Below are positions 3,040-42,430 of a DNA stretch of 45,739 nucleotides, one piece after another (within the stretch, counting starts at the first letter, position 1; every line of letters begins with the position of its first letter). The notes below the pieces were generated by a model. That model ran no database searches. It was not told the origin of the DNA and worked only from the letters and a program-made list of their open reading frames with translations. The stretch is from assembly GCA_030704615.1 (NCBI GenBank), contig JAKLZA010000012.1, forward strand, positions 1-45,739, written 5' to 3'. The stretch is from Takakia lepidozioides. Its lineage: Eukaryota > Plantae > Bryophyta. The position numbers and the translations under genes were made by a program.

Positions 3040-3060
3040 TGTTGGAAAACCACTGGCGTA

Positions 3061-7419: not shown

Positions 7420-7693
7420 TGTATGATGGCAAAGTCATGATGTCATGGATGTATTTCTTGCATTCATGGGGCATGCATGGTGGATGCGTACAGTAATACT
7501 GAATTCAATGTGTGACAGTAGTTTCGGGAGCAAGGGACCCGGCACATGGGGCGGCAGGTGGAGCGGGAGGGGGGCGCCTGGCACTGCGCGGCGCTGCTGC
7601 GAGGGGGGGCGAGGTGGAGGGAGGGGGTGGGGCCACGCAGGCAGGCCCGCTAAGGCAGCATTCAACTCCCGAGCCTCTTTTATCACTTGCCGT
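7420..7693. repeat. ~275-bp GC-rich repeat, copy 2 (inverted relative to 1487-1772)
   Basis: TGTATGATGGCAAAGTC...TTTTATCACTTGCCG; high identity to copy 1 with a short internal deletion. No TSD found. Confidence 0.9.
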
Positions 7694-12021: not shown

Positions 12022-12038
12022 TTACCCCTTCCCCTCTC
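12022..12038 (-). other. Polypurine tract of copy B
   Basis: Minus strand GAGAGGGGAAGGGG-TAA directly precedes the TG of the 3' LTR. Confidence 0.85.
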
Positions 12039-12059
12039 AAAAAGCCGTGTCCTCACGGT

Positions 12060-15000: not shown

Positions 15001-16300
15001 TCAGAATCAAGAATTATTTGAGCAATGATTGGGCCAGACACTATGATAGGAGACTTTGCGGCAGTACCCTGTAATCTTTTCATTCCTCTACCAGTGCGTT
15101 GTACATTATGTCCGCCCATTCTACCTCTTATCCTCTCAGGGCTTTGAGTATTTCCTCTGCGAAGGATCTGCTCAAATACTGTTGGTTATGTTTCACGGCA
15201 AACAGAACGTTCAATACCTGGCCTACCTCCTTTAGCCTTGGGTACACGGCCTTGGTACAAGCATAACCCTGAGTTTTAAAGAAACTCCCTTCTTGGAATA
15301 AGTCCCCTATTTGCAGTCTTGCCCTGTGCTCCTCCACATGGACCTGGCCTGCTGGCAATCGAAACAATTGCTGGAGGTATAGGGGAGTAATTACTAATTC
15401 AACTCCCTTCACCATTGTTGCTCATGTCCTTGGCTCAAAGTTCTGCAAGAATTGTAACATGTACTGTCTATGGTGCAATGTCCAATCTTTGCTTTGCAAT
15501 CCTTGCAATCTCAGCTCCTTCAGTATCTGTATCGCCTGTGGGGTAGCAATCGTTTGTTTCTGCAGAATTGTGGTGCTCTTCACCCTGATTTCCTCCATTC
15601 CTCTCACTCTCTTCATTCTAGACCCACAGAAATGTTTTGGCTGTAACAACTAAAGAAATGTCTGTAGTGCACAAAGCATAAACGTATGGTTGCCACAAAA
15701 AGCTATGGGTAATTTCTTGTAAGCCTGCGGGGCTTGCAAGCATCGCTTAAGAGAAAAGATCCGCTCTGTTGTTTCGTCCCTATGCCATTGCGTAAGTAAT
15801 ATTGCGAGTGTATAGTCTGGTAGTTCCTCCATAGCTTCAAAGCTATAGCATTGATGGTTTGTCCCGTCGAGACGCCCGTTACTCAGAACGACGCCGACTC
15901 TTGCGCTTAATTTCCCTCCAATTTCTTGATCCTTTCTCTGGCTTTCTATTGGCTGTAACCGCTGTGACTGGATTTTAGATTTAATTTTCTTTAGTGGACT
16001 TTCCCTGCTGGACTGTCCACTAGGATAACACATGTGACAAGAATTTCGCTTTTCTGTACTTGTCGTTTGTTCTGTTGCCCCTTTTCTGTATTCATTAATG
16101 GGCCCGCCATTCATCCAATTTGACGCACTGATTAGGTATTTTGACGGCCATTCTTGTCCCCTTTCTTGATGACATCCGTTCTTGCACTTCCTTCTCAGCT
16201 GTGTGTTGCGCCTTGACTTCCACGTGTCCCTTTGTAAACTGTCTTCCGTCCTTTCTTCCGCCGGCCATTTCACTGAAGTTATCATGCGTCCACCTGTCAC
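12060..16300 (-). pseudogene. 3' extra ORF of copy B, fragmented by stops and frameshifts
   Basis: ORF pieces 15650-16300, 15422-15649, 15128-15415, 14646-15119, 13336-14601, 12347-13348 and 12060-12287 are collinear with the long ORF of copy C. Confidence 0.88.
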
Positions 16301-16335
16301 TGATTCTATGGATTGTGTAACCCTAGTAGGCTGTG

Positions 16336-19300: not shown

Positions 19301-21575
19301 CTCTTAGCTTCTTCAAAGAATTCTGGCTCCAAATCAGCTCCTACCTTCACCATCCTCGGTTCCTCTTTAGTTCCCACATTCACTTCCCTCACTTGCTCAT
19401 CAGCTGTGATTGTCCAACCAGTCACCACTTCATCCTTTAAACTCACAGTGGCTGGTTCCTCTAAGATTTCCATTTCTCCTTCTTTTTTTTCATAGAAATG
19501 TGATGGGTAACTGCTGGTTTCCTCTTCAATCGGTGTTGTTGACACTACACCACAGCAGATACCCCTTAAACAACTTAGGCCTTCCAGCCGCATCTCTGCA
19601 ACCTGCTCCCACTCTGGGTGTGCAGCAAACAGGGTAGCTTCCTGCTCCTCATCCAGTCCTCCTCTCCAGTCATACTCTCTGACTCCTTGAGGTCTTCTTG
19701 TAGCAGGTAATCTACTAGATTTCTTTGTGGTAATTTGTATCTCATGTATCCCATTATGCACGGTTAGTAACTGAGAATTCCAGTCATGAAATACCCTGGC
19801 CTGTTTCAACCACGGACGTCCCAATAATAAGGAGTAAGCCTCCATGACTTCATCCATCTTCAACACAGTTACTGTGATCATAAAGATCATCTTCTGTATC
19901 TGTATCTTAACTCCTCATATTAATCCCAATGGCTGTACACTTCTTTGATATGCCATTGTTACTGTGAATGGGGCTGGTTTCATGTTACTTAGACCAAGCT
20001 TCTTCCTTAATTGGTCTGTCATGATATTTACTCCAGAACCTCCATCTATCAGTACATCAGTTAGTTCTGTGCTTCCAATTCTCAATTGGATTACTGGCAT
20101 AGAATCATCAAAGTCCATGACTGTTTCTCGCCCTTTCGGCTTCACATTATAACTGGTCACCTTGCTGTTCAGGTCTGTGTTTCCTGTCTCCTGGGCAATT
20201 CGATTGATTGCTTGATACAGCCTGTGCCTACAATAAGGTGCCACAGCCAATAGTTGTCCAATGGTAATCTCCGCTTTGGTCTGGCATATTATTTCAGCCA
20301 AAGTCTCTTCATTACTTTGCATGTCTGCATCTTCTTTCTTCATTTCATCCTCACTCACTTCTTCTTCTCCATCAGAATCAGAGGAATCTGCCACAGGAAT
20401 ATCAGTACTCTTCTGCGTTTCCCTTATGGTATCTGCCACTTCCTTGTGCAGTTCCTTCTCATCTCTCCAAGCCTCATCATCTTCCGGCATATCACTGCCA
20501 CCTTCATTATCATCTTCTTCCTCTACTACTGGAGGTATTAGTTTGGCTTTACTTCTTGTTACTATCATTGTACTTACTTCTGGTACAACACATGGCCTAA
20601 CCATGTGAGCTGCCACCACTGGGCCCTCATTCACAGGAGCTCTCATCTCATTCTGGTGTCTAATCCAGAATGAACAGGCTGCCTTGCGATGTCTTGGCTG
20701 ATTACAATAGTAACAGAGTTCTTCACCATTGGGTCCTCGCCCTTGGTCTGCTCTTGGATTATTTCTGTAATCCTGATTCCCGGGCTGGTAATTCCCCCTT
20801 GGATTACCCTGATAGTTGCCTCTGGAATTTCCTTGGTAATTCCCTCTTGAATTACCTCTCCCTTCCATGCCATTGTTATAACCACCAGACCTACCATAGT
20901 GGTCCTGATCATTGTTTCTTCTTGGCTGGGGTTGCTCCTGATGCACCCTTACTTGCCTAGGTTCTCTTGCAACTGTCCTTCTGTTGTAGTAACAATTCTC
21001 ATTAGAATGGTTATCCATTTTACAGATAGTACAGTGTTTCTCCTTCATGTGGCATTCTATGGTGGTATGGCCTTCATTCTGGCACTTTGCACACCATGCA
21101 CCCTTCCTCCAATGTGTTGCAGCCTCTGTAGCATACTTCTTCAAGATTTCTTCCAATCTTTTCTCATAGTTATCCCTCTTCAACTTCTCCTTTCTCTTAC
21201 TCTTCCTTTTTAGTTCTTGCTCTTCTTCTTGATCTGACTCATCCTCAGAGTCCTCATCATCCCTTTTCTCTCTCCTGAGCATTCCCAATTGCTCAATTCT
21301 GTTTGCAGTTTCAAATGCCTCCTCCACTGTATTATGGGGTAACATATCCACTTTCTTTTGCAACTCTGGTCTTAGTCCACTCACAAACCAAGTCTTCTGT
21401 AACCCTGGTGCTGGTACTGCAGCCAGCTTTTTCATCATCAATTCCATCTTTTCCATATACTCCTCAACAGTTTCATGCTTCTTTTGCTTTAACTGTTGTA
21501 AACTCCCATACACTTCATCCTCAGTTTTACTTGTCCTGAACCTATTTTGGAATGTTGTATTCAAGCCATTCCAGG
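16336..21575 (-). pseudogene. gag-pol: gag-pol of copy B (N-terminally deleted, in-frame stops)
   Basis: One frame with nonsense changes near 19915 (AGA>TGA), 18025 (TTA>TAA) and 17935 (GGA>TGA). Zn knuckles, PR (IDGGSG), RT (FLDD), RNase H (CDASG...ERNYSTTEREALA), integrase (HHCC, WGLDFVGP, GPY). No chromodomain and no extra archaeal-type RNase H seen. Confidence 0.93.
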
Positions 21576-21898
21576 GGCGTAAGGGGCGCGCAGACGAGCG
21601 ATGGGCCAATTTCCGCCCCGCAGAGCGACGATGTACATGACGAGGACATCATTCCAAGTCAATCTGCCGTTGTATCTTTGTCGCAGGTTGGTGAATTGTA
21701 CTCAACCCAGCTGCACTTAGGGGTGAACCTAGCAGACTTGACGCGGGATTTGCCCATGAATTCTGATACTGATACCGAAGATGATACATCAAGGTGGAAC
21801 ACCCAAGTGCGAACCTCTTTGTCCGCAGCCCCAGTCATTTCTTTTGAAGGTCTTAATCGAAGAATCGGGGACCTGCTTGACCCAGAGTCTGTGTATGA
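21576..21898. other. ~320-bp foreign filler replacing ~1.1 kb of copy B (end of 5' ORF and start of gag)
   Basis: Homology to A stops at 21575 and resumes at 21899; the equivalent A segment (~9684-10808) is absent. The filler is CpG-rich and open on the + strand. Confidence 0.85.
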
Positions 21899-22516
21899 CT
21901 TGGCTATACTTGAAGTCTCCGTTACCATATAACCATATGGCAAACAAGTCTGAAAAGCTGTTCTTGGTGTGAGTTTGATCCACAAAATATCCTTTGGAAT
22001 CCAATTCTTTACCAGTACAAACTCTTCATGCATATGAGTATAAACATTCACCTTTCTTTTCTCCCAGCCTTCAAACTCTACTCGCTTAATGGATAGCAAT
22101 GCTATCACATAAACCAATGTTGGTAACCAACGTGCTCTTCCTCTACAGGCCACCTGATAAATCTTTATCACTCCTTTCTCCAGACCCCACTCTGGGTCAG
22201 CATCATGCACTCTCTTAAGAATGTTTTCTTTACAACCGTCTGGCAATTCCAAAAACCTCTGGAAGAATCGTTTCGACAATCTTTCCTTCTCAATTTCACA
22301 AGGAATTTGATTCACATCAAATTCTTTAATTCTCCATCCACCATGATCCCACCAGATGCCTGTCACATCTGGTTGTTCATGACCCAGATCCCCAGTATGG
22401 TCGCCAAATGTCGCGCGGCTTTTACTCACCCATCCCTTCGCTATCCGAGGCGGAAACTCCAAGATAGAAGAGTTGGAAATCTCTAAGTACTCAGCCCGCT
22501 CAGAACAATCAGTCAT
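21899..22516 (-). pseudogene. 5' extra ORF of copy B, fused to the filler
   Basis: Homologous to 9066-9683 up to ...TETSSIAK, then reads into the foreign DNA. Confidence 0.55.
22389..22406 (-). other. PBS of copy B (tRNA-Arg type)
   Basis: Minus strand TGGCGACCATACTGGGGA(TC) 2 nt after the 5' LTR. Confidence 0.82.
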
Positions 22517-23406
22517 GACCTACAGCTAGTGTATCATGGGGGTGTTTCCTATTTGTTTTCCTTCCCGCATTCATGTTAGCTAGTTACCTTACTGCTGGTA
22601 ATTAAGTATCAGTTTGCTTCATCAATTTATCGGATTCCATCAACTCATCAATTCATTCCACAGCTTCACTCAGATCTCTCTACACAGTGTGAGTATGAGG
22701 TGTGTATCAGATTAATATCTATCAAGTATCAGGCTGAAGCCATGGAGTCTCTAATCTGTTCTACATTACAATTCTACTGCCTGCATTCATTAAGCATCAA
22801 CAGCTCCTCCTCCTACTCCGTGTTCTCCATCTTTCTGCTCAGAGATACGCTCTCTCCTCCTTTCCCCCAGTGATGTCCGAAGTCTTCCCCAAGAAGTGCT
22901 TCTAAGAATAATCCCCCCTTCAGTCCTTGCTTCTAGCTTTATCTTCCTACCCGTTGTTCTAACCGTTTCCCTCACTAACCGTCGTCCGTGAACTAATATG
23001 TTCCATTCGCAGGTGTTGTTCCCCACAGTCGTTCCCTGTCCGGCTATCCGTTCCCTATGGTCGTGACAGCTGTGTCAAGCTGTGACTGGTTGTGTGAAAC
23101 TGTGACCGGCTGTGACCGGCTGTGTCGGGCTGTGACTGGCTGTGCGACTGTGTTTGGCTGTGTCGGGCTGTGACTGGCTGTGTGGCTGTGTCGGCTGTGA
23201 CGGGCTGTGTTGGCTGTGATGGGCTGTGTCGGGCTGTGTCGGCTGTGTCTGGCTATGTTGGCTGTGACGGGCTGTGTCACCCCCCCCCCCCCCTAAAAGT
23301 GCGCTGCTGTCACCCCTAAGGCTCCTGTTGGTCTCAGTCTGTGCAAAAATTAAGGGTACCCCACAGATCCCGTACAAGTGTCTAAGTCCCAGACAGTCCT
23401 CTAACA
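22409..23406 (-). repeat. 5' LTR of copy B
   Basis: TG...CA, flanked by the PBS and TSD AAGAC. Confidence 0.95.
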
Positions 23407-25237
23407 AAGACTTGGTTTGTGAGTGGACTAAGACCAGAGTTGCAGAAGAAAGTGGATATGTTATCCCATAATACAGTGGAGGAGGCATTTGAAACTGCAA
23501 ACAGAATTGAGCAATTGGGAATGCTCAGGAGAGAGAAAATGGATGATGAGGACTCTGAGGATGAGTCAGATGAAGAAGAAGAGCAAGAACTGAAAAGGAA
23601 GAGTAAGAGAAAGGAGAAGTTGAAGAGGGATAACTATGAGAAAAGATTAGAAGAAATCTTGAAGAGGTATGCCACAGAGGCTGCAACACATTGGAGGAAG
23701 GGTGTTTGGTGTGCAAAGTGCCAGAATGAAGGCCATACCACCACAGAATGCCACATGAAGGAGAAACACTGTACTATCTGTAAAATGGATAACCATTCTA
23801 CTCAGAATTGTTACTACAACAGAAGGACAGCTGCAAGAGAACCTAGGCAAGTAAGGGTGCATCAGGTGCAACCTCAGCCAAGAAGAAACAATGATCAGGA
23901 CCACTATGGTAGGTCTGGTGGTTATAACAATGGCATGGAAGGGAGAGGTAATTCAAGAGGGAATTACCAAGGAAATTCCAGAGGCAACTATCAGGGTAAT
24001 CCAAGGGGGAATTACCAGCCCGGGAATCAGGATTACAAAAATAATCCAAGAGTAGACCAAGGGCGAGGACCCAACGGTGAAGAACTGTGTTACTATTGTA
24101 ATCAGCCAGGACATCGCAAGGCAGCCTGTTCATTCTGGATTAGACACCAGAATGAGATGAGAGCTCCTGTGAATGAGGGCCCAGTGGTGGCAGCTCACAT
24201 GGTTAGGCCATGTGTTGTACCAGAAGTAAGTACAATGATAGTAACAAGAAGCAAAGCCAAACTAATACCTCTAGTAGTTGAGGAAGATGATGATAATGAA
24301 GGTGGCAGTGATATGCCGGAAGATGATGAGGCTTGGAGAGATGAGAAGGAACTGCACAAGGAAGTGGCAGATACCATAAGGGAAATGCAGAAGAGTACTG
24401 ATATTCCTGTGGCAGATTCCTCTGATTCTGATGGAGAAGAAGAAGTGAGTGAGGATGAAAGGAAGAAAGAAGATGCAGACATGCAAAGTAATGAAGGCAC
24501 TTTGGCTGAAGTAATATGCCAGACCATAGCAGAGATTATCATTGGACAGCTATTGGCTGTGGCACCTTATTGTAGACACAGGCTATATCAAGCAATCAAT
24601 CGAATTGCCCAGGAGACAGGAAACACAGACCTGAACAGCAAGGTGACCAGTTATAATGTGAAGCCGGAAGGGCGAGAAACAGTCATGGACTTTGATGATT
24701 CTATGCTAGTAATCCAATTGAGAATTGGAAGCACAGAACTAACTGATGTACTGATAGATGGAGGTTCTGGAGTAAATATCATGACAGACCAATTAAGGAA
24801 GAAGCTTGGTCTAAGTAACATGAAACCAGCCCCATTTACAGTAACAATGGCAGATCAAAGAAGTGTACAGCCATTGGGATTGATAAGAGGAGTTAAGATA
24901 CAAATACAGAAGATGATCTTCATGATCACAGTAACTGTGTTGAAGATGGATGAAGTCATGGAGGCTTACTCCTTATTATTGGGACGTCCGTGGCTGAAAC
25001 AGGCCAGGGTATTCCATGACTGGAATTCTCAATTACTAACCGTGCATAATGGGATACACGAGATACAAATTACCACAAAGAAATCTAGTAGATTACCTGC
25101 TACGAGAAGACCTCGAGGGGTCAGAGAGTATGACTGGAGAGGAGGATTGGATGAGGAGCAGGAAGCTATCCTGTTTGCTGCACACCCAGAGTGGGAGCAG
25201 GTTGCAGAGATGCGGCTGGAAAGCCTAAGTTGTTTAA
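23407..25237 (+). pseudogene. gag-pol: gag C-terminal part and aspartic protease of copy A
   Basis: Resumes in register after the TSD. Three CX2CX4HX4C knuckles, RGNYQGN repeats, protease motif VLIDGGSGVN and LLLGRPWL. Nearly identical to B's gag-PR. Confidence 0.9.
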
Positions 25238-28200
25238 GGGTAGAAGCATGGTACGGGCCATCCAAAAGCGGCAACTTGCAGTCCATAAAAAATGGACATA
25301 TGAAGTAGAAAACGCAGCACGCGGGAACGAAGTCGGAAAAAGTTGAATTTATTGTAGCCGTTGATTGTTTTTGTACATCAAGTTATTACCGTCGATTGGA
25401 GGTCGCCTTCATCAGGGGGTGGCTGGAAGATGGCTGGTCGCGTTGGGCTAGACTGAAGCGCGGGGACGATGAGCTGCCATGTATGACGCGCGATGCGCAA
25501 CTAGAAGCTAGCTAGGACGTACGAGTTGATTGGGATTAGGAATGTGAAGAGATTGGGAAGAGATTGTGAATGTTTGATCACAAAAGTTTGCTTACCATTT
25601 TGTAAGATTTTTAGGGTTTAGCTTGTGATTGTTTCATCAACTCTACGCATGCGTGAAGTTCATTTTCATTTCTGTGTTTCTATGGGCGCGCTTGGGTGGT
25701 GGTAGCAGAGGAAGCGGGCGATGCAAGCAGAGCTTATAAAGTGCAACATTGTGTGTTGCTGCCATAGCAGCAGAGGCACGAGGGTAGAGGAGTAGAGGAG
25801 GAGCTTGGGCGGGGGTGCTCGGGTGTGCCATCGCTGGAAAAGCACTTGATTGTTGCCTGACTCTACCCTTGGTAAGTTTCGTTCAAGTTCGTGGCTAGTC
25901 GATTTGGTGTGCGGCATATCTGGAATTAGGTTCCTGCAAGCATGAATGTTTCTGTCGTAGCGCCTGGAAAGAGATGGCAGATTGCCATCCAAATGATGAT
26001 CATGACTAGTAACTTTCCACTTGAACTCTACAAGTACGAACCACCGCTGCGATCTTTCACGCCTGATTCTATACTTCTTGCATTGTGCATTTGAACACAG
26101 GTGGTTAATTGCCTTTCTTGAATCTTGACAGTGATGCCTGTTTTGTTTATCATTCTCTATGGTGTGTTTCTTGTTGGGTTGGTATTTCTCCATTTTTTTC
26201 CCTGCCCAGAGAAGGATATACTTACGTCTTGTTAGTGAGTCTAGTTGAGCTAATTTTTGGAGCTACCTGCTAGCAATTCATGTTGTAAAACCCTACAAAT
26301 TTAGGCTGCACAGTCATTCATACATGACAGTTTGTATGTGACCATTACGGTGAGGGTACCTGCACGATGATTGATCACAAAAGTCTGCTTACTATTACCT
26401 TTGTGAGGGGCTCACTCCAGTAGTTGGAGCTACCTTGATATAAACAATTGGTTGCATCAATCTGTTGTGTCTGAGCTACCTAGCAATTAGACCCCAACAG
26501 GGCCAGGGCCTTAGGCTCAGAATCGATACTTTGAAAGTTAGTGAACAGAGGTGCAAGCACTACACGGTCCTGAAGAGGGTGGCTCTCTGATGAGAATACC
26601 CGGGACACTGTTTTAGAAAATGGGTATTGCCTTCAGCGCGCCCACACATCGAGCATTGACAATCTCCCTTTCCTGTCTGCATGTGTTATTTGTTCAAGAA
26701 TTGACCCCCCGCCCTGGGGTTAAATTGTAGTTAATGCTGAGGATAGGTAGGCCTTTCAGCCTAAGGTTCACCCATGTCACAAACTGGAAACAAGTTCAGG
26801 GATGTTTATTCCTAACTTGTTTTTGTTCAAGCATTATTCATGCTTCGGACGTGGCTTTAGACACTTCAGCCTCCAAGTGAGCTTCATCCAGCAGGGTCAG
26901 TTCTTCCTGCCCAAACTTCAGGTACTTGAAACATCTCCTCTACATTTTTCTGCCATGACTTCAAACTGTTTAACAGGACGGTCTTGCTTCCAAGAAATAG
27001 AGTCTGTCATCTTAGGGTATCTGGTATTAGGCACTGAGCCCACCATCTGACCTTGAACTAACTCATGACTTTGAGAGCTCGAGGGTGGTGCGCCAAACTC
27101 GCCTTGAACAGCCGCATTAGCTATTGTAGAGCACGCTGACATGCTCTCTTTGAGCACTGAAAGCTGAATGGATTCTAAAGTCTTAGGCATGGTTGGAGTT
27201 GCTCTCTCACACGGCAATGCCTACTCCAAGGTAGGCCAACATGGTCGTTGTAACTTCAGTATTAATCCGTCTGCAGTGGAAACATTTGAGTGAGAATATC
27301 CAAAGTTTGTGTTTAGTTGTTTGACCTATTTTGTGTATGTTCATCACAGTTACAACTAGAGGAGAACTCCACAGCAAGATATGTACTGGAAGGGAGCACA
27401 CAATTGTGGCATTTAATGATCGTGGGGAGGGATGAGGGGATCTGGCCTAATCTGGCCTACCATGCAGACTTGTGAACTGTTGTCGCTGGCTGGTTTCAAG
27501 TGAGACTGCATGCCCTTTTTTGTCAAGTTGCATTTGTATATGGCTTGTACCAAATGTGGTCGTTGTTATAAAAAGGACGATATCAGCGAGGTAGGGGAAG
27601 AGTAGCAGATGTAGCATAAGTAGCTGAATGTAAAGTTTGTCACACTGGTAGTGGGTACCAAGTCCAGTCTATTCGAACAAGTTAACAGACCCCTGAGTTT
27701 GTGTCACTTATCTTTGTTGTTATGACTTCAAACTACTCTCCAACGAGCTACCCTTTTTGTGTTATAGTGAGGGGGCAAGTGGATCCCATTTTTGGAGACC
27801 TGGACAGTAACCTATTTTCTAGTGTGCAGAAGAAGGGCCCAACAGTGTGATTGTTGATTGCCAAGGAATTTTGAGTGTCTGTGTTGAAAATGTTTGGTTT
27901 CTCTTGCTGCCATGTTAGTCCTTGAAGAATTTACTTTTTACTATCCTCTGATTCCATCTGCTTGCCTGCATATGTTGTCACATTTGTGGGGCTACTATTC
28001 AAACAAGTTTCAGCTGTTTGTGCAGCTGATTTGCGGGATGGCAGGTGGCCTGCGGCTCTCCCTCACGCTACCTCCCACCACATCTTGCAAAAGCATTACA
28101 GGTGTGGCACCCCCTTAGCATTTGTGCAATCTGGTGTTCCCTACTCATATTTTCACTTTTATTGCGTACCTCATAGCCTAGGTGGGGTAGAGGGGTAGAG

Positions 28201-28756
28201 TAGTCTCTTGTTGTTGTAGCACGTGACAACCCAGCTCATCCTTGCGTACCTAATTACCTAAACTGAACCATGACGCTAGATTGAAGGAACTTGTCCCTTC
28301 TGTCAATCATTGGTTGGGATCGAAGAGGAATATGGCAATGCATATCATCAATATGTGAATGTTGATTCTCTGAAACTTCACCATGTGGGGGAATATAGAA
28401 TTTGAAAACGTGTGGAAAGCAGGTTTGTCATCTATGTGGATCACTTGCACTTCTTGAAGGCTGCACTTGCGTTAACCAGAGATGATCCAGACTTGGCCTC
28501 TGATTGCAAAGGTAATTTCATGTCAGAATTAGGTAGTATGGTTGTCATGAAGCTGGAAATATCAGTAGGGTTTAGGGTTTGTTGGTTTGTTGGTTCTCAT
28601 GAAGCTGGAAATGTCGGTAGGGTGTTGGTTTGTAGCTCCATCCTTGCCCCCTCATGTTGTTGTCTCCGTACATAACCAACCTGGAGTTGTAAAAAACTAG
28701 TTAATGGGAATGTGGGGCTGGGAGTATGTAGGGCACTCAAGAAGTGGTTCAAAACA

Positions 28757-30251
28757 ATGGTGCAGTCGGGGAGTAAGTTACAAAATTCACCTACGAATGG
28801 GAAGAGTTCCAATGCAGCATCTGAAGATACTATGGGCGAAAGAGGGGGGCACAAATCAGCAGATTACTTCAGGGATGTCCTCAAGCTGAATGCGACAGGC
28901 AAGAATCCCAAACAACTTCTCTTAGACAAAGACATCACCAAAGAACAATGTGCAAAGTTGTTTGGACAACCTGCAAACAAGAATGGGTACTTCTACATGG
29001 GTTGTACTGACAAGAGTATGATTCCCAAAATCGAGGACCTATGGAGTAAGGTTCATGGGTATGATTGTAAGCCAACCGGTGGTATCATTGCAAACTTGAT
29101 GGCAAGGGGCATTGTCTATGAAAAAAGGACTGGACAAAAACTCAATTGGGTAGCATACGCGGCATGGACAGCTAAGCAACAAGAAAGAATGAAGGAGCAT
29201 CGAGAAGCAAAGGACCCTGGCAGCACAGACAGTAAGCCAAAGCTAGGAGTTTGTGAATTGAAAGACAGGCTACGCAAAACCCCAGGTAGAGGCAAAGAAG
29301 GACTGAAACAAACGCCTGAGCAAGTGATTGCAGAGATGGAAAGGAAAAAACATGAGCAAGAGTATGTGGCAACTGCCCTAGCGAGTCTTCAGGAACTACA
29401 TGATTTGAAGTATGAGGAGATGTGTGGGGCAAAGGAAGAGTTGGAGAGGTTAAAGAAAGGGAAGTTGGACTTGATGGAGAAGACGCGGACTGTTCGGGTG
29501 CAAATGGAAGATAGACAATGGTGTCTTGCAGAGTGTCGGAACAAGATTGCAGACCTAGAGGCCAAACTCACCCACGAGGGTGCCACAATCCGAGCCGGGG
29601 AAGAGACCTTAATGCAAAAAGGGGAAGAGAGTGTTGGGTCACTGAATTGTGGAAAGGGAAGACAGTCTGAGATGCAAAGGGAACTTGACCAGAAGAAATC
29701 AATTGAAGCGGAATTTTGGCTCAATGCTGATAAGACCAAAAAAGAGTTCAATGCTTTGTGTGATGCAGGGGACCAGGAAGACAGGGACATTAGAGTGGCA
29801 GAGAATGTGGTCGATGTTGCTGACACAGAGAGGAGTCTTATCCAAGATCAGATTGAGGCCTTGACAAATGGGGACAAAGGACTTGCCATCTATCCTATGC
29901 CTATATGTCATCCTCAAGTGATCAAAGATAGTACGTCCATCAAGGATTTCCTGAAGGTCTCTCCTTGCCCTGTTTGCCACAAAGGTTTCCACTGTTGGGA
30001 CATGGTGGTGACATCTTGTAAGCACACTTACCATCCTGCTTGTATGGCATCCCATATGAAGATGTCAAACAGGTGTAGGGACTTCAGCTGTTCAGAGATC
30101 ATGCATCCTGATTGGTGTTCTAGTTTTGGGTTTAGGATTCTTGACCCAGAGGTGCAGGCACTTGCGGAAAAGCTGAGAGTGGTTGAGCTGCGCCAAAGGT
30201 GGATGTCAAAGCAACTTCACGAAGCCAGGGTTAGAAACACCCAAGTTCCAG
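28757..30251 (+). CDS. Passenger gene exon 1: mobile-domain-like N-terminus, coiled coil, RING-H2 finger
   Basis: Long open frame with a heptad-rich central region. CPVC-x13-CKHTYHPAC-x10-C-x4-C fits a C3H2C3 RING. Ends at CCAG|GTAAG (phase-1 donor). Confidence 0.8.
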
Positions 30252-30339
30252 GTAAGATTGATTGCAACATTTCCATGTTTTCTTCTTCAGAAAACTTGTG
30301 TGGTCCAAGGCTGTACCTCTTCATGTCCAATCCTCGGGA

Positions 30340-30910
30340 CTGTAGTCCCAAGATTGGACCTTCAACCCCTTCAACTGACTATGAGTCTGAATGTGGGACT
30401 GCAAATGTTATTATTTGTCCTTTTAGTGGAGTGAATCCTTACTGGGGAGTCCTTATTGAGGAGTGTCATTCTTAACTAGAATTCTGAGTCTTCAGTCATG
30501 TGGAGTGTGAGTCCAAGTGCTGACTCATGTGGAGTATGAGTCGATGTGTTTAGTCATGGGGAGTGTGAGTCCACTTGCTGACTAATTACTGGGAATATGA
30601 GTCCTTAATGATTTCCACTGATTTCTAGTTTGGAATCAGAGTCCTGTGGAGGGTCAGTCCATGTGCTTAATCATGTGGAGTGTGAGTCCAACTGCAAAAT
30701 AATGGATGTAGAATGCGAGTCCTTATTGAGGAGCTTGCTTCTCAACTTGGAATCTGAGTTATGGCCCAGATGGAGTGTGAGTCCTAATTAGGGAGTGTGA
30801 ATCTTGCTTGTAGTCCCACCATCAGCTGCATAGAACTTGGAAGTCTAATATGGGGGACAAAAAGTCCATTATGATGGACTGTGCACTCCCCACATAATTA
30901 TTGTAGTCCA
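30340..30910 (+). repeat. Degenerate ~30-bp tandem array (CATGTGGAGTGTGAGTCC-like) in the RING gene intron
   Basis: More than ten AGTCC occurrences counted by eye, often about 30 or 60 bp apart. Confidence 0.8.
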
Positions 30911-30988
30911 ACTGTTGGGACTTCGGCCAATGGTAAGGACTACAATGACTTGTCTGGACTCAAATTACAGTTAATGTTGTATTGGTAG

Positions 30989-32305
30989 ACAGTAGGCACC
31001 AAGTGATAATTCAGCCTTCTCAAACCAGTTGTAATGGTGTAGGTGTGATAGCAGATGATGGCTTCATTGATGCCAACAAACGAAGACCAGGACCTCCATC
31101 TCAGGCCACCACCAACTATAGCGCATTCACCACCAACTACAGTGGAGGCCAAAGTGGACATGGTGGTAGTGCTGTGAACCAAAACTTCCCTCGAACTCCA
31201 AGCTCGTCAACTCTTCAAATGTCACCTTTGGGGCTGTCGCGGCCGGGGATTGTTGCACCAATTGTTGGTGATCCGTTGAACCCTGAGGTTGATGTCACAC
31301 CTGATACCATCATGCAAGAGGTTTCAGCTTCAGGAAAGGGTTATGTCAAGAAGTTCCTCATTCCTGGTTCTCCACCAAAAAAGATTCCTGGATCTCCACT
31401 GCAAGCTGCATTTGTTCCAGAGATTGTCACGACACATACGCTACAAAGTACACATGAAGATGTTGTGGACTTGACAATCCCATCCACTGTTGTTCCTCCT
31501 TATGTGGATGTGAAGGTTGAAAGAGATGGTGCCCAAAATACTGGACATGTGGCAACCCTCTCATCAGACTCAGAATTGGGGTCACAGGGATTTGAAACTG
31601 ATGCTGGGGCCGACTCCCAGTCTGATTCTGATACAGTTGTGTTGCACAGTACCATAGGTGGAGGCCCCTCACAAGTTTCAGATCCTATATTTCATGTCAC
31701 TCTACCAGTTGCTACCTCCCTTGTTGCTCCGCCAATATCCATTCCCGCAATTCCAGCTCAATTGGATGGTGGTTCTCCATTACCTATGGTAGTATATGTA
31801 CCTCATGCCTTAGCAACAACCCTCCTGTTCTTGGACCAGTGTTGAACCCCCCAGCTGTAGCCCTTGTCAGTCCACATGTTCAGGCAACAGGGAAGCGTAA
31901 ACGAGAACGAAAGAGATCTCGCAAGGCATTGAGTGCAGAGTATGCAAAGAAGCCCACCACTAGGGCGGATTCTAAGGTATCAATTGACAAGGATATGGAC
32001 AAGTGCCCAGGTGAAAGTACCCCCTCATCAAAGAGAGTTGTCGTGCACAAGCCCTTGGATACGAATGAAGACAACGATCTGAGCCACCATGATAAGAGTA
32101 ACTCAATCCCACGGGATGGTGTTGTGAAGGCCGCTCGGGGCCCTGTTGTGAAGTCACTGAAAACCGTGAAGACTCCTCCCAACTTGACCACTCGGGGGCC
32201 TATTGTCAAGTCCCTTAATACTGTCAAGACCCACCTAACTTGAAGATGGATGCAGGTTCTTCTGGTGCAGGCCCTAAGAAGAAGAAAAGAAAACATATCA
32301 ACTAG
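30989..32305 (+). pseudogene. Passenger gene exon 2: low-complexity S/P/T-rich tail with basic NLS motifs (two apparent frameshifts)
   Basis: Acceptor TTGGTAG|AC restores codon G|AC in frame with exon 1. Frameshifts near 31810 and 32232 join ORFs 30982-31845 and 31839-32243 to a final ...GPKKKKRKHIN*. Also contains KRKRERKR and a 57-bp tandem duplication. Confidence 0.65.
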
Positions 32306-34266
32306 GTACAAGCTGAGTACTGTACACTTATGCTTTTATCACTAATGTTAGAATAACTCTTGGTTGTTATTTTGCCAATTCATGCTCAAGTTTCTGATGC
32401 AATTTAACTCCTCTATGCATGATATATAGGACATACATCTGGTATACGTCTAGTGCTGAATTATGAGACAGAAGTATAGTAAGATCTTGAGCATTGTGGG
32501 TGGCAATGCAGGGCATGTGATTAGCAGACCGCCCCTATGAGGACTTTACCACTCGCTGCTGTCATTGTGGGGACAGGTCTCGTCTCTTCATCAGTACTTG
32601 TTCATTTATGACATGGCCACTTTGGGAGGCAGGCACCAAGCAAAGGCTAGTCTTTCATCGATGGGGTAGAGGTTGGTGCCACGATATGTCAATGTTGAGC
32701 AGTTTAGAACTGGCAGAGGATGTGTTAGTTGTTACCATTAGGTGCCCAGCCAAGTCATGTGATGAGGATTTGCCCTTGTGGTTTCTCGAGTAGCTCACAA
32801 TGGACACATGACATGGATTGAGGGCATGCACATTACTGTTCTTTGTTCATCTTCTGCTGATAGGTATGCTGTACATGTTTGAGTAAGGCAGCAATATCAT
32901 GACAGTGGTTTTTGAAAACAATGCACTCTATTTTGCTATCTGTTTCTGATAGGAATTGCTAGAATACCTTCGTGCAGGCAGTCTACTGTCATTCATTCTA
33001 TGTGAGAAAGATGGCTTTGAAAGGCCCATTGCTTTTCCTGCCTGTGCTACAATTCTCCAACATGCGTGGGTTTAACAGAGTCTGCGCCTGAAATTTGACT
33101 AACTGGTGGATGGTATGGCTACATCCGGTTGCGTACCTCTATCCTCCTTTGCTTGACTCTGATAGTTCATTTACAAAACTGCAATCGGACACCAACAATA
33201 CAAGTCTCCATCTCTCGATGGTAATTAGTCTAGCTCCTTGGTGAAGATCCCTGGTATGGCGGACCGAAGCCTGGCCAACAGACAACATTCCCATCATTCC
33301 CCTCTCTACAGGAGACAAGCTGGTTCTGTACCCCAAGTCAGGACACTAATCAACTCACTAAACAGAATATACCTCAGTAATGGCAGCTCTAAGCAATCTA
33401 CCTTCGCTCAATTGAGCACATAAATGTGATTTGTAGTGCTGCCTGCCTAATTCTTTAGAGAGTTTGATAGTATCTCTCAACTTCATCCAAGCCCAAAAAT
33501 TACTTGTGTGTATGATTTAATGCATGCAGTTCAATATGCAAGGATGGCTTAACTTTGAAGAGGGAATCAAGACAGTATGATAGCAGGTCTGCTGCTGTTC
33601 CACTTGATTGTCCCACTGTGTTTGGAAGGCTGTTAGCAACTCAGACTAGAATGGCGCCCGGCTTCAGCGTGTTGAGGATCATGTGCCTTATTTTTACAGC
33701 TATGATCTTCTCCACTTTCTTATCCAAAACGAGGGTGTGGAACTTTGAAAGAACCAGGAAGTATGACAAGTTGTAGGGTTTATGATGAGGTTTTGCCATA
33801 TCTTCGTAGCCAGGCACCTTTGCCAACCAGTTGGTATGAGAAGGGGGAGGACAACAGATTGTGTGATCAGAGAGGAAGGCAAACACACTCCAAATAACAA
33901 GAAACCAATCACAGAAAGAAAACCAGACACATTAAATTGAAATTCCCCGCCTTGTGAAGTGATACACCACAGCACTAGTGCGGGAATTCTAGTCACCAGG
34001 CACATTCAATTGAACAGTAACAAATTTGGCCACAGCCACAGCCTCTTCAGCCATAGCTTGCAAGATAGATTATAGATTATGAATTATAATTGCGGCCAAA
34101 TAACAAAGCTACATACATACAAATTCCGAAAACAATCTCTCAGCTCACAAGCAACTTGTAATTCACATTGCTACATATTTGAGTTACATAACCCAAGGGA
34201 GAATTGGACCCCATCCCGATAAGGGAAGTTGCCCGTCAACCATGGATTGGCCTGCAACATGCCATC

Positions 34267-36185
34267 TTAGCGATCTTCCATTGCTGCCAGAGCTTCATTG
34301 ATGCCTCCCAATGCATCCGCAGACAAGGTGAAGACTGCATCCTTGCCTTTGACTCGATATGTCGCTGGAGGCATAGCAAATTTGATAGCCCTCACCAAAT
34401 GCGAATACAGAAATGCCAAAGGCTGGTCAGATAGGAACTTGTAAGCCTTATCTCTTCTTCCACACAACTGGTAATATCTCCCTGCAACCACATGCTCGCC
34501 AGGGTCAAAAGTACTTCCCCACCCATCTGTGAATGTCTCCATAACAACGTGAACCGGCCTTTCACAACAGAGCAAGTAGAAGTCCACCCCTTCTGAGTTT
34601 CCAGCTTCAGCATTGCAGGCAAAATTGTCCCCTGCATCCAAGCAGGAGGCCAAGTCCTCCCCATCTCCCCCAAACTCTTGTTCTTCATCCCCTTCTTCTT
34701 CAATCTGCCTCCGGACAGCAGTTGTATTTGTAGGTTGCAGGGTTTGCAACTTCCATTTTTGTGCATGAGCAATACTGATGCAGTTGTCCCAATCAAGATC
34801 CAAACAATGCGGACAAAAACATGCTAAGTCTCGAACCATGAGTTTGGTTGGGTCTGACTTGTTCCTCCCAAGAATGGAATGTAAAGACCGAGTTCCAGGT
34901 ACGGTCTTGCAATCCCACTCTTGTGTACGGTCAACATCTTCTGTACCAACAAGCCAAAAATGTCTTTTCACTGCTGTTCTAATCTTAGAGTACGAAGAAG
35001 GAGGTCGGGTGGACAGGTTCTTGCGCAAAAAAGCTACTGCCTCAGCAGCATTTTGCAGCTTCACACCATTTGAGTTTAACTGCTCTGCTCGTAAAGCCCT
35101 CTTGATCACAGCACCAGCCCCATCGTGCTCACCTTTCCCGTGCCCTGATCCAAAAAAGTTCCACCACATTGTGCAACCCCCTGTGATGTGGGGGTACCTA
35201 CTAACAAAAATACCAAGGACGAGCACCTTTAAACTGAGCAGCACAACCGTCACTCCATACCCAATGCGATTTAGGTCTGAACCCTGCTTCAGCAAGGTAA
35301 TTCCAATGAAACCGAAAGCAATGTTGTACGAACAGCGTGTCATGCTTGTTGTCATCAGAAATGTAAAAGTGCATTTCTTTCAAAACCTTGGAATCGGGAT
35401 CATTCACATCAGGGTGTGGATTCCACCGGTAGGTAATGTGCACCAATATAGTGATCTGGAAACTGTGCCAGTGCATCTCTTGCACTTCATTCTGAATTGT
35501 AAAAGTGTAGTTTTCAGCAAGTCAACAACAACAATATTGTATTCTCTGGCAAAGATTTCAAACTGGCTTTAAACTGAGCATCTTGCCATCGGGCTACAAA
35601 GTTATGACGAACAAAAGCCTGTAGCTTGGGTTTGAAGTATGACAAGAATTCAACAGAGGAAGTCGTTTGGTATTGGAGTTTCAGTCTCATTCTAGGGGCT
35701 CCATCTTTCTCCCCAACATTCTCTTTTGCATAGCATCTCCACTGCACTGTCAAATCACAACCATTTGCCTCCATGGGACAAATAGATAACTTACTTGAGC
35801 CACACCTCAAGCACTCTCTCATGAGATAGTCTCGCCGATGCCATTCATCCAATTCCCCTTTGGGACAAACAATTTCTTGCCAAAGCCAAGTCACTTCTTT
35901 GTAGGGGTGCTTGTTCGCTTGACAACCAGCTTCACCATCTAATACTGGTCCACGTCGACAAATATTACAGTCACAAGTACGTGATGATGGAGAGTGGACA
36001 CCCCTCTCGGCAGTCCGCATGTTGTTGAACCCATCCTTCAACTCCGCCATCTCCACATGATATTTGCAGCAACAAACATTACGATACTTCAGGCGTTTGA
36101 CAAAGAATGGCCTCAACAACTCAAACAATCGTTGACCCACTTTGACATTGGGATGGGCTGATTTGAAGCGAAGAAAGAAAGCAGT
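34267..36185 (-). pseudogene. Sola2-type DDD transposase, main exon (frameshifted)
   Basis: Motifs CCCKYH, VVD(F)AENY, ISDDNKHD, WSDGCAAQFK, WNFFGSGHGKGEHDGAGAVIKR, PGTRSLH and CFC-x2-C. One-nt indels near 35520, 35535 and 35207. Family assignment comes from recalled Sola2 motifs. Confidence 0.8.
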
Positions 36186-36249
36186 CTGCATTGCCACCAC
36201 AACATGCACAAAGAGAATCCCATTTAGTGCATGCACTAAGAATACCTAC

Positions 36250-36850
36250 TACTAGACCTAGACCAGTCCTAGACCTAGTCTTAGTCATAGTCCTTTCTCA
36301 TCACATGTCAAATTGTACAAGTACTAATCAGTCCTAGTAGTCCTAGACCTAGTCCTTCCTAGTCACAGATGAAGTAGTACATGTACTAATCAGTCCGAGT
36401 GTGAGTCCTTTCTAGTCACATATCAAGGAATGCATGTACTAACTAGTCCTAGTCCTAGTCCTAGTCACATACCAATGAATGCATGTCCTAATCAGTCCTA
36501 GTCCTACTTCTTTCTAGTCACATATCAAGGAATGCATGTCCAAATCGGTCCTAGTCCTAGTCATTGTCCTTTTCTAGTCACATTTCAAGGAGTGCATGTA
36601 CTAATGGAGTACATGTACATCGACTTCTAGTCCCTCCAAATCAAATTACATGGAGTGCATGCTATTTTGTCCTATCTAGTCATAATATAAGGAGTGCATG
36701 CTAGTGAGTTGTACTTCTAGTCCATCCCAGGCCTGTTTACAATGAGTACCAGTCCATGAACAAGAGGGACATCTTCAAGACACTCCAATTCAGGACATGA
36801 GCTGGGCATAGTATCCACAATTGAGTACAGTAATCTCAGTCCACTGGTAG
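36250..36850 (+). repeat. CTAGTCC / TCTAGTCACATATCAAGGA-like tandem array in the transposase intron
   Basis: Repeated (CTAGTC)n with ~50-60-bp higher-order units; roughly 15 AGTCC occurrences. Confidence 0.85.
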
Positions 36851-37025
36851 GTTTACAGGTGACGATGTACCTTGTCTAGGGAAAATGTACGAGGCAACCC
36901 AAACAACACAATGGCAGTTGACAAACTCCAACATAGTCCAATACAGTTATGTACAGTAGTAAGTGTAGAAGGATTGTAAAGTACTGAGAGCCCACACAAA
37001 CACTGTAAAGAGAGGGTTCGCTTAC

Positions 37026-37088
37026 CTGAGTCTCAAGAAGATAGTGAGCAGGTTGTGTATCATAGACTTTCCTCGATACGCGCTGCCT
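37026..37088 (-). CDS. Upstream transposase exon, interrupted by Gypsy copy C
   Basis: RQRVSRKVYDTQPAHYLLETQ|GTAAG splices in phase 0 to TGCAG|ACT (TAFFLRFK...). Intron 36186-37025. Confidence 0.75.
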
Positions 37089-38212
37089 TGTCGCGCGGCT
37101 TTTACTCACCCATCCCTTCGCTATCCGAGGCGGAAACTCCAAGATAGAAGAGTTGGAAATCTCTAAGTACTCAGCCCGCGCAGAACAATCAGTCATGACC
37201 TACAGCTAGTGTATCATGGGGGTGTTTCCTATTTGTTTCCTTTTCCGCATTCATCTTAGCTACCTTACCATTGATAATTAAGTATCAGTTTGCTTCATCA
37301 ATTTATCGGTTTCCTTCACTCCTCCATTCAATCCACAGCTTCACTCAGATCTCTCTACACAGTGTGATTGTATCGTATAAGTATCAGATTATGATTTATC
37401 AGGTATCAGGCCGAAGCCATTATGTCTCTAATCTTCTTTCCTATATCACTACAGCTTTGCATATAACAAGCATCTACTAATCCTCTTTTCTCCTTCATCG
37501 TGCTCTCCGATCTCCGCTCCCGCCTGACTCCGAAGTCCTCCCCGAATAATCATAATCCTTCTTCATTCCCCGTTTCTCCCTTTATCCTCCTATCCGCGGT
37601 TCTAACCGTTTCCCTCTCTAACCGTCGTATGTGAATAACATGTTCCCTTCACAGGTGTTGTTCCCCACAGTCGTTCCCTGTCCTACTCTTCGTTCCCTAT
37701 TATCGTGACAGCTGTGTCAAGCGGTGACTGGCTGTGTTTGCTGTGTCGGCTGTGCCGGGCTGTGACTGGCTGTGTGGGCTGTGTCTGCTGTGACACTGTG
37801 ACGGCTGTGTGGGCTGTGTGGGCTGTGACGACTGTGACGGCTGTGTGGGCTGTGACGGCTGTGTGGGCTGTGTGGCTGTGACGACTGTGACGGCTTGTGT
37901 CGGCTGTGTCGGCTGTGTGGGCTGTGTGGGCTGTGACGACTGTGACGGGCTGTGTGGGCTGTGTGGGCTGTGACGACTGTGACGGCTGTGTGGGCTGTGT
38001 GGGCTGTGACGGCTGTGTGGGCTGTGACGACTGTGACGGGCTGTGTTGGCTGTGTGGGCTGTGACTGCTGTGTCGGCTGTGTGGGCTATGTAACCCCCTC
38101 TACAGTGCGCTGCTGTCACCCCTAAGGTTCCTGTTTGTCTCAGTCTGTGCAAAAATTAAGGGTACCCTACAGATCCCGTATAAGTGTCTAAGTCCCCTAC
38201 AGTCCTCTAACA
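37089..38212 (-). repeat. 3' LTR of copy C
   Basis: TG...CA. Ends match the A and B LTRs, the middle has diverged, and the CTGTG array is expanded (~37705-38092). Confidence 0.93.
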
Positions 38213-38249: not shown

Positions 38250-41200
38250 TTACTGTTTCCGAGTAGCAACCCTTTGTGAGTGAGCACCTTGTTGACGTTG
38301 AGAGTTTCGTGGCGGGCTGTGTGTACGAGCCCGAGGTCTGTCTCTGGTTGATGGAGATGGTTGATCACTACCTGGATAAGTGAGGCCTTCTGGAGGCTGA
38401 TATCGAGGTAATCTTTCCGGCATAGGAGATCCCCTTTGTTTCTTCTCTTCCATCTGAATTGCATAGTCTTCTCCCATGTCAAAAGAATTCTGTGAAGAAA
38501 CAGTTGTATCAGAATCCTCATCGCCTCTCAGGTGTTTTAATTTTCGAACTTTTTGTGGAATCATCTGGGGCATACAATGCTGTCCTACCATGTCTGGAAG
38601 TTTGCATTTTACAACCTGGTGTAACCGTTGAACAGCAAAATTGGTGTAGACACTGAGCTCCTTGTCTGTCCAGATGAGTGGGGTACCAATTACTGGTGCA
38701 GCGTGCAAGTATTTCCATGCGATATGTCCCTTATAGAAAATGTCATCAAGTCCGAATTTCTGTGTTGACAAATTGTTGCAGGCTGCTTGAAACCATGAAC
38801 GAATTTGAGAATCCTTCTGTATCATAACTTTTGGGTCATATAGGTACATATGAGGTGGCACCGAAGGTAATACCCAATGATCTCCACTGGAGTAACTTTG
38901 AAAGCGTGCTTGCATCTTTTGTTGCTCAATGTGGTAACGTATCAGAAAACAAGCAGCGTAGTATAGCCCGCACCCCATGACAATACTTGCTATCTCCTTG
39001 GTCTTGGTATAAATGAGTCCATGTACAACCTGGAAAGCAACCAATTCCCTCAACATGGTACCTGCCTCGTGCCAGTATTGTGCAAAGTGATGATCTTCAA
39101 TATGTCGATTGTTTGGAAGAACTTTAGTCCTGGTTGCCACTGGCAGCCAAATACGCATGATTTGGTAGTAATGTGCGAATGACTGCGGAGGACTAAATTC
39201 TTTCCAAGCCAAATCCAACATGATGGGAATTTGGTTGAAGGGCATAATCATAGCCCTACTGTACTCCCTGGCAGCTGGAGTTTTAGGTGGGTTAAAAGCT
39301 GCATTGCCCCATACCTCCGGCTGTGGTGGCTGTGGTGTGGTTGTAGTAACCACAGGTTCAGCTACTGGTACACTGACCTGTTGTGGTGGTGGTGGTACTG
39401 GTTCCTGTACCATTGGCATCTCCTGCACCTCCTGTGAAGACTGAAAAGCCAGAGTTCTGGCTTGCAAATAAGAAGCCATTAGCTGTTCCTGAGGGATATA
39501 GACTCTTTGGTCGATGTTTGAAGTGAGGTCTTCCACTTGAGTCTGGAGTCCGTCTACATCCTCTTGTAACTCTGCTATCCTACTATAGACATTGTCTATA
39601 GTAGTTGTGGCAATGTTCTGCACCTGCAGTCTGAGCTCATTCATCTCGCTTTGGGTGAGCTTCCGTGGGCTTTTGCCCTCTACTGGCCCTTGTGCTAACC
39701 AGACCTGCATAAGGCTGTTATCCACCAAGCTGCTTGTGGTTCCCCTGAGAGTTTGCTCCTCTCTTAGCTTGTACAATTCCAACTGCTGTTGTAAAGCCTC
39801 CATGCGCTTCGCCTGTGGCTCAACCAATTGCGCATAGGCAGCAAGTAGATTATTGGCTTCCTTCGAAGCCTTGTTACTGACCGCGATTTCATTTCTATTG
39901 GCCACGATGGTTTGTTGCAACTCCACGATGTATTTCTCTTGCTCAGCTTCCATCTGCCTGTATTGCTTGAAAGTATCTTCATTGCGACAGATTGTATTCT
40001 TCATATCGACAATGAGCTTCATGTGCTCCACATTCTCTTCTTCTGCCTTCGTACATTTTTCCGCTTGACTGTTTATTTCTTTTGTTGATTGGTCAAGCAT
40101 AGTTGTAAATGTAGCGCATTGTATCGCCATCCTGTTATGCACTGTCTGCAACTCCGTATGTAGTGCATTCAGTTCTTGCAACTTGCTTTCATGCTGCACC
40201 TGCATTTGGTATAGCTGTTGCTTATGTGCTTCGTGCAACTGGTCTTGCGCGAGGCCTGCCTCAATCAATTGTTGCTTGGCCAATTGCAAAGCCATTTCTG
40301 TATTGGCCAAGTCCTGCTTCATCTTGAGAGTGACCTCTTCATCGACCTTGTTTGCACACTCAGTGGCAAGTCGAGCCTCAAACTCCTTCCTGAGTTCTTC
40401 TTTCAAGGCTGTCAATTGGGTAATTGGAACATGGGTTTTGACATAAGTCCCCAACAAATTAAGTGTCCTGCCTATGGAACTCATCAGCATTGCCTGTTGA
40501 GGGTCATCATGGTGAGGTTGCTGCTGTTCCTCCCGATCTTCAACAGTATGATGTCTCACTAACCATTCAGACCATTGTCCCACCGGATTTTCTTCCTGAA
40601 CTACTTCATTTATGACCGGTGCTACAGTGTCATGGCCTTCCGCCTGTGGTACCTCCGACACAGGTGTGTGCATTATATGTACCTCAGGATTTCTCTTGGG
40701 CAACTGTTGCACCTCTGGGATTTCTGTCTCCTTGACCAGACCAGAATATTCATAGAGAAGGTCCCCTTTCTCTATTTCTGCCACTATCTGTTCTGTAGTT
40801 GGAATATCTATCCCTTCACTTTCCAAATCAATTATTTCGGGTTGAGCTGCATGGATAACTTGTGACCTTGTGACAAGTCGTTCAAGTGGCTGTGTTGGTT
40901 GTGATGCAGAAGTAACTTCTTCCTCCCTCTCTGAAGGTCCTGCTTCCAGTAATAACATTCTTTTGTGCTGCTGTGCCCCTTCCTGGTCATGAGCTTGGGA
41001 AACATTATCATGCGGAATCCGTGAAGCCAGTGGATCCGCCACTACAGTCTTTCCCCTTCTCTGCCTCTTAGTCTCGGGTTGTGCTGCTAGTCCACCCTCA
41101 CTGTGTGAAGAGCCTTGCTCTTCCATTGCAGTTGTTTCTGGCTCAAACACTCCCATTTCCTTCCTTTCTTGTGCATTAAGTATGCCAGAATAAGGATTAT

Positions 41201-42430
41201 TTGAGCAATGATTGGGCCAGACACTATGATAGGAGATTTTGCGGTAGTACCTTGTAATCTTTTCATCTCCTCTACCAGTGCGTTGTACATTATGTCCGCC
41301 CATTGTACCTCTTGTCCCTTCAAGCCTTTGAGGATTTCCTCTGTGAAGGATCTGCTCAAATATTGTTGGTTCTGTTTCAGGGCAATCAGAACGTTCAATA
41401 CTTGGCCTATGTCTTTTAACCCTGGGTACACAGCTTTGGTACAAGCATAACCCTGAGTTTTAAAGAAACTCCCTTCTTGGAATAAATCCCCTATTTGCAG
41501 TCTTTCCCTGTGTTCCTCCACATACACATGACCTGCTGGCAATCGAAACAATTGCTGGAGGTATAGGGGAGTAATCATTAATTCAACTCCCTTCACCGTT
41601 GTTGTTCCTGTCTTTGGCTCAAAGTTCTGCAAAAATTGTAACATGTACTGTCTATGGTGTAGTGTCCAATCCATGCTTTGCAATCCTTCCAATCTCAGCT
41701 CCTTCAGTATCTTTATCGCCTGTGGGGTAGCCATCGTTTGTTTCTGCAGAATTGTGGTGCTCTTCACCCTGATTTCCTCCATTCCTCTCACTCTCTTCAT
41801 CTTAGACTCACAGAACTGCTTTGGCTGTAACAACTGCAGGAATGCCTGTAGTGCACAAAGCAGAAACGTATGGTTGCCGCAGAAAGCTATGGGTAATCTC
41901 TTGTAAGCCTGCGGGGCTTGCAAGCATTGTTCAAGAGAAAAGCTCTGCTCTTTCGTTTCGTGTCTCTGCCATTGCGTAAGTAATATTGCGAGCGTATAGT
42001 CTGTTAGTTCCTCCATAGTTTCCAAGTTATAGCATTTATGGCCTGTCCTGTCGAGACGCCCGTTACTCAGAACGACGCCGCCTCTTGCGCTCAATTTCCC
42101 TCCATTTTCTTGATCATTTCTCTGGTTTTCTATTGGCTGTATCCGCTGTGACTGGATTTTAACTTTTATCTTCTTTAGTGGACTTTCCCTGTTGGATAGT
42201 CCACTAGGATCACACATGCGACATGAATTCAGTTTTTCTGTACTTGCCGTTCGTTCTGTTTCCCTTTTTCCGTATTCATTAATGGGCCCGCCTTTCATCC
42301 CTTTTGACGGCCGTTCTTGTCCTCTTTCTTTTTGACACCTGTCCTTGCACTTCATTCTCTGCTGTGTGTCGCACCCTGACCTCCACGTGTCTATTTTTAA
42401 AGTAATTTCCGTTTCCTCTTCCTCAGCCAT
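38250..42430 (-). CDS. 3' extra ORF of copy C (one 1-nt frameshift near 41191): plant-transposon/mobile-domain-like region, coiled coil, C-terminal helical domain
   Basis: ORFs 41087-42430 and 38250-41444 join if the base present in B (…GAATCAAG…) is restored. VKGVELMITPLYLQQLFRLP…VQWADIMY resembles Transposase_32/PMD-like domains of OTA extra ORFs. Confidence 0.8.

Follow-up and report, generated by a model that had tools for sequence, protein, structure and literature searches.

In this study, the surviving part of a two-gene, very probably Sola2-like DNA transposon was identified in Takakia lepidozioides at positions 25238-37088 of the window, i.e. of the whole analysed stretch of 45,739 nucleotides (contig JAKLZA010000012.1 of assembly GCA_030704615.1, positions 1-45,739, forward strand). 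The introns of its transposase gene and of a convergent gene encoding a RING protein are conserved, and the non-coding DNA of both genes is enriched in a short motif specific to the family. We propose, with a probability of roughly 40% for the mechanism as a whole, that the element represents a land-plant Sola2-like lineage with its own accessory gene and self-recognition, in which the accessory protein would be the motif binder.

The window consists of nested plant Ty3/gypsy DNA, in which an older retroelement was interrupted twice, by the Sola2-like insert and by an intact LTR element at 10992-23406, whose two LTRs are 94.9% identical and which has an AAGAC duplication. The intact gypsy element has long extra ORFs downstream of pol. 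Other repeats in the window are two 139-nt direct repeats (92%) at 2830-3177, each with a tRNA-like cloverleaf (ARAGORN), and, in its left part, an inverted pair of 284-nt GC-rich repeats (88%; 1489-1772 and 7420-7691). The features of the element and its borders are:

25238-37088: two-gene Sola2-like DNA transposon, surviving part (self-BLAST: retroelement homology ends at 25240 and restarts at 37089)
25234-25241, plus strand: left junction, TTAA then GGG (compared with the uninterrupted paralogue near 19563)
25241-25871, plus strand: CpG-rich terminal region, putative promoter and RING-gene 5' UTR exon (inferred from CpG o/e and motif positions)
28757-30251, plus strand: accessory-gene exon 1, open, 498 codons
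28850-29236, plus strand: conserved N-terminal globular domain of ~130 aa, FG..NG.Y ... ARG ... NW, no Pfam match
29315-29869, plus strand: long helical or coiled-coil segment, residues ~187-371 (alignment and low-confidence single-sequence model)
29966-30091, plus strand: atypical RING-H2, C3H2C3, last pair Cx4C (Pfam, alignment, residue census)
30252-31042, plus strand: accessory-gene intron, 29-nt array at 30496-30583; 13 AGTCC and 6 reverse copies
31043-32305, plus strand: accessory-gene exon 2, disordered tail with basic stretches and a 57-nt coding tandem repeat; two frame changes
34267-36185, minus strand: exon 2 of the Sola2-like transposase, split into three by frameshifts (near 35520 and 35205)
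36186-37025, minus strand: transposase intron, 53/62-nt arrays at 36252-36605; 18 AGTCC on the plus strand
37026-37088, minus strand: transposase exon 1, final ~21 codons (tblastn with exon 1 of locus L007)
37089-38212, minus strand: Ty3/gypsy 3' LTR inside transposase exon 1, foreign to the DNA transposon (self-BLAST)

The left junction is genuine, and the start of the insert is ambiguous within 25238-25241, where a G run is common to the empty-site paralogue. With the junction ambiguous by 3 nt and the right end outside the window, the TTAA preceding the left end is a candidate for a putative 4-bp AT-rich target site duplication. No terminal inverted repeats were found within the window, as expected because the right end is missing there, and no clear ones were found in L007. 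Position 37088, initially taken as the end of the element, is an insertion site and not a terminus, since LTR-family homology begins exactly at the TG at 37089, directly after it; the right side of the element was removed by this LTR retrotransposon insertion. The region 25241-25871 has a CpG o/e of 0.95 (vs 0.1-0.4 in other parts of the element) and carries a putative TATAAA signal at 25735 and a putative donor at 25872. The 3.5-kb left region and the 2-kb spacer of the element gave no protein or DNA match. The left region also contains a 30-nt direct repeat (90%; 25570-25599 and 26367-26396) and, 40 bp from the left end, a GTCCAT/ATGGAC hairpin (25280-25297) that includes an AGTCC core; AGTCC-core copies are present near both ends of L007 too.

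The initial annotation had described a spliced minus-strand transposase of Sola2-like type, and both points were upheld, with exon 2 at 36185-34267, the intron at 37025-36186 and a motif series that agrees with the published Sola2_DFa-2 protein motif by motif (PMC3627910, supplement 3; L007 and the window pieces were compared). The Sola2-type DDD motifs are present, and the frameshift near 35520 falls at the site of the first catalytic Asp. No Pfam family matched the transposase, and exon 1 retains only ~21 codons vs ~250 in L007. Homologues come from mosses, a liverwort, a fern and Klebsormidium. The transposase and the RING gene are both broken and the Takakia copy is dead. Sequencing error is an unlikely source of the frameshifts, because the adjoining younger retroelement keeps two intact ORFs over 3 kb.

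The accessory gene was also predicted correctly as a convergent, spliced, plus-strand gene with an N-terminal domain, a coiled coil, a RING-H2 and a disordered exon 2. Its RING matches Pfam zf-RING_2 with an E-value of 0.004, under the curated cut-off, and all eight zinc ligands are present and conserved across the alignment. The last pair is Cx4C in 45 and Cx2C in 32 of the 83 family members, while the canonical E2-contact Trp was found in 5/83 and the linchpin Arg in 2/83 (the Takakia copy has His and Ser). Because of this last pair and the general lack of the canonical Trp and linchpin Arg in the family, ligase activity seems plausible, not assured. The frame changes in exon 2 lie near 31800-31840 and near 32240, the latter within the 57-nt tandem repeat, where one base is missing from the second copy. 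A candidate intron of 51 nt near 31790 was rejected as the cause of a frame change, its length being a multiple of three. The proposed terminal nuclear localization signal, PKKKKRK (32273-32293), is present in the sequence, but in the Takakia copy it does not share the reading frame of the RING; the missing base in the second repeat copy suggests that it was formerly the true C-terminus of the protein.

A full HMMER scan with accessory exon 1 yielded 383 clusters (at 50% identity), several of which span the N-domain, coiled coil and RING; the named members are hypothetical proteins of Riccia sorocarpa. The spliced genes were searched as single exons or pieces. Word-index protein searches with exon 1 and with the family alignment gave no matches, and no viral contig relatives were found. 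The N-domain is predicted to fold with a pLDDT of 91.6 and is compact and mostly net basic, with conserved Lys/Arg. It had no match in the ESM atlas (features, shape), Foldseek PDB/BFVD, PDB sequence search or Pfam. In a structural comparison with 48,161 chains, VANC21 gave the longest alignment among the best 50 (117/141 residues). The N-domain is a candidate DNA-binding domain, possibly a remote relative of PMD/DUF1985, and the initial idea of an "independent version" of the VANC design becomes doubtful because of this possible VANC-type relationship. Kinship with DUF1985 is only suggestive, and none of 35 N-domain family members had a PMD or DUF1985 Pfam match. As a separate lead only, an extra ORF at the 3' side of a gypsy element (41087-42430, minus strand; paralogue near 15128-16300) has a C-terminal domain that weakly resembles the accessory N-domain and that the ESM atlas places close to clusters of DUF1985 and PMD (0.84-0.85).

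Linkage of the two genes was surveyed in 80 metagenome loci fetched with the transposase, most of which end too early to be informative. In L007, the transposase (46-58% identical) is convergent with a gene for an N-domain, coiled-coil and RING protein, both introns are at the same positions, and no other gene lies between these genes or close to them. A more divergent N-domain and RING gene is convergent in L025, the RING gene lies upstream of the transposase on the same strand in L063, and RING matches were found downstream of it in L027 and L035. The anticipated constant linkage was thus confirmed in part: the RING gene belongs to a multi-copy family and is convergent in L007 and L025, and its place is taken by a convergent NIF/FCP1-like gene in L016 (2767-3972) and L020 (5322-6104, minus strand). 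The latter genes have DLNG instead of the DxDxT motif. In L087 (5065-5982) and L088 (4613-5761), the RING gene is followed in tandem, on its downstream side, by a second paralogue with N-domain and coiled coil. In Riccia, the accessory gene is convergent to a DUF7869 transposase (L003) or located beside piggyBac and gypsy sequence. The L003 region (R. sorocarpa, 3773-24586) comprises a NIF-like gene, the RING gene and the convergent DUF7869 transposase, with GACGCGTCCC arrays in the spacer, the transposase introns and the upstream region. The RING gene is thus an accessory gene that transposons have retained for a long time; within the Sola2-like lineage it is not constant, and it also occurs outside that lineage.

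Tandem arrays with different periods (29 nt vs 53/62 nt) and a common AGTCC core in the two introns had been noted at the outset, and both observations hold. Judged against 300 dinucleotide shuffles, AGTCC is enriched in the RING intron (13 vs 1.1 expected) and in the transposase intron (18 vs 2.7 expected), exceeding 300/300 shuffles in each case; it is at background in the remaining element and flanks, and the termini are near background. Two details were corrected. Plus-strand copies do occur in both introns, as was claimed, but a further 6 copies in the RING intron are reversed (0.9 expected), and only 2 of its 13 AGTCC lie inside the detected tandem array, the other 11 being dispersed outside it. 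The core was likewise enriched in another element, as foreseen: it is kept in both introns of the distant relative L007, in the same orientation (7 vs 1.3 and 6 vs 1.7 expected) and mostly outside tandem arrays, while blastn similarity between the window and L007 is confined to coding DNA, with none in the introns. This comparative evidence is stronger than the enrichment within the Takakia copy, and the motif is probably a selected, if still putative, binding site. An m6A (GGACU) reading of the core was rejected on strand grounds, as the RING intron carries it in antisense and L026 in flipped orientation.

The transposase introns of other land-plant relatives contain other words (GCTACC, CCATGA, AGCTCA, ATGCTA, CATTAA, AGTAC and AGGTGA), and no motif arrays were found in the transposase intron of the more distant clade. 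In a transposase tree composed of fetched loci only, without curated Sola1/2/3 references, the GGAC-type families L007, L031 and L026 form a supported clade and are the rows nearest to the window, which is itself not firmly placed; unlike this clade, other transposase clades use other motifs. Motifs were trained solely on the transposase intron and then scored on the accessory side, where they were enriched 1.6-5x in 6/11 tests (the window, L007, L012, L017, L019 and L025), with no enrichment in the five others, several of them short; the families tested are related and few and so are not independent replicates.

We favour the accessory protein as the reader of the motif, because of the layout in L007 and L025, the presence of AGTCC in both introns without intron similarity and the cross-side enrichment, as well as the compact, mostly basic N-domain and the VANC21 alignment, the longest among the best 50 of 48,161 chains. 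The mechanism is modelled on the analogy with VANC (PMC5735166). The N-terminal domain would bind the AGTCC core, and the coiled coil would multimerise the protein, restricting binding to dense motif clusters. The RING might then recruit or ubiquitinate chromatin or silencing factors, and both genes of cognate copies would stay expressed through VANC-like anti-silencing or trans-activation. Alternatively, the transposase itself may read the motif, for self-activation or synapsis, with the RING gene as a separate helper (e.g. in transposase or host-protein turnover). Intron arrays in nearly every land-plant relative, whichever gene is the neighbour, a motif class that tracks the transposase tree and the AGTCC copy 40 bp from the left end all fit this option. 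Against it, transposase sites are usually terminal or subterminal, but in this element the enrichment is in the introns, with the termini close to background. Arrays of this kind are also missing from the more distant clade. Transposases alone can activate cognate copies, and the AtMu1 peaks are located at TIRs (bioRxiv 10.64898/2026.08.24.746577). On balance, the transposase is a somewhat unlikely reader.

It is improbable that the arrays are neutral intronic minisatellites with a core common through intron-to-intron copying and shared descent. The two Takakia introns do have a word of 12-13 nt in common and match at 79% over a stretch of 34 nt, so that one may have seeded the other; moreover, tandem amplification inflates any k-mer, and GTAC/GTCC-like motifs recur in unrelated elements. 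Neutrality is, however, difficult to reconcile with the conserved core in the otherwise dissimilar L007 introns, mostly outside arrays, and with the recurrence of the two-site pattern in several families that use different motifs. About equally improbable is a reader supplied by the host or by another accessory gene that the Takakia copy has lost or that lies beyond it. The right part of this copy is missing and the accessory sets of relatives vary (NIF-like genes, second N-domain paralogue), but motif turnover between families is easier to explain by a reader that the element encodes and that co-evolves with it than by a fixed host factor, and L007 has no additional gene beside its two.

The VANDAL and Spm elements of flowering plants are documented examples of sequence-specific anti-silencing through accessory proteins. 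If the accessory protein is indeed the reader, the motif-array design would extend to another superfamily (Sola2) and clade (early-diverging land plants), and the RING would be an enzymatic effector that VANC lacks. Families with different motifs constitute a natural panel for mapping protein-DNA specificity, also usable for testing the origin of the VANC/PMD domain. A broader proposal, which we consider rather unlikely, is that several superfamilies of DNA transposons in non-seed plants share a mobile accessory module, a RING ligase joined to a minimal DNA-binding domain of PMD/VANC type, which co-evolves with family-specific intronic motifs. It would be an ancient ubiquitin-based, sequence-targeted anti-silencing system older than eudicot VANC.

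Sola2 DNA transposons were reportedly described by Bao et al. in 2009. Their target site duplications are 4-bp and AT-rich (PMC3627910), and the Takakia element resembles them in its catalytic series (DF.EN, WSDG..xFK, HGK..D, as in Sola2_DFa-2) and in the AT-rich 4-mer at its left junction; it differs in its land-plant lineage, spliced transposase and intronic motif arrays. The initial view that no such cargo is described for Sola elements agrees with our literature search, incomplete in coverage, which found no RING gene or motif arrays. Sola2-Fanzor1 chimeras have been described, and amoebozoans are known to have Sola2 elements 10-15 kb long that carry a passenger gene (PMC3627910), whereas the accessory gene here encodes a RING protein, not Fanzor. 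PMD/MAIN-MAIL and DUF1985 are likewise TE-associated helical domains proposed as DNA-motif readers (bioRxiv 10.1101/2024.09.27.615353; PMC13547354), with a similar helix-loop-helix-[NW]-helix register, but the Takakia-family N-domain (~130 aa) is far smaller, and 35 of its members lack a Pfam match to PMD or DUF1985. Spm/CACTA TnpA and AtMu1 share the element-encoded, motif-directed activation of cognate copies that is inferred here (bioRxiv 10.64898/2026.08.24.746577); the binders there are transposase-derived, whereas our candidate is an unrelated RING-bearing protein.

VANC systems are characterized by intronic tandem motifs, family-specific turnover, tandem peptide repeats and coiled-coil multimers (PMC5735166; PMC13547354). 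The Takakia element shares with VANDAL/VANC an accessory gene within the element family (L007, L025; not constant across the Takakia lineage), a dense short motif, mostly in one orientation, in introns and amplified by tandem repeats, motif differences among related families, and an accessory protein that has a coiled coil and tandem peptide repeats of variable kind. It differs in its Sola2-like, not Mutator, host (no MULE Pfam match), its non-eudicot lineage, its core of 5-6 nt vs 8-9 nt in VANDAL and the RING attached to its accessory protein. By anatomy, the element thus appears VANDAL/VANC-like without being a member of that group, its host not being Mutator.
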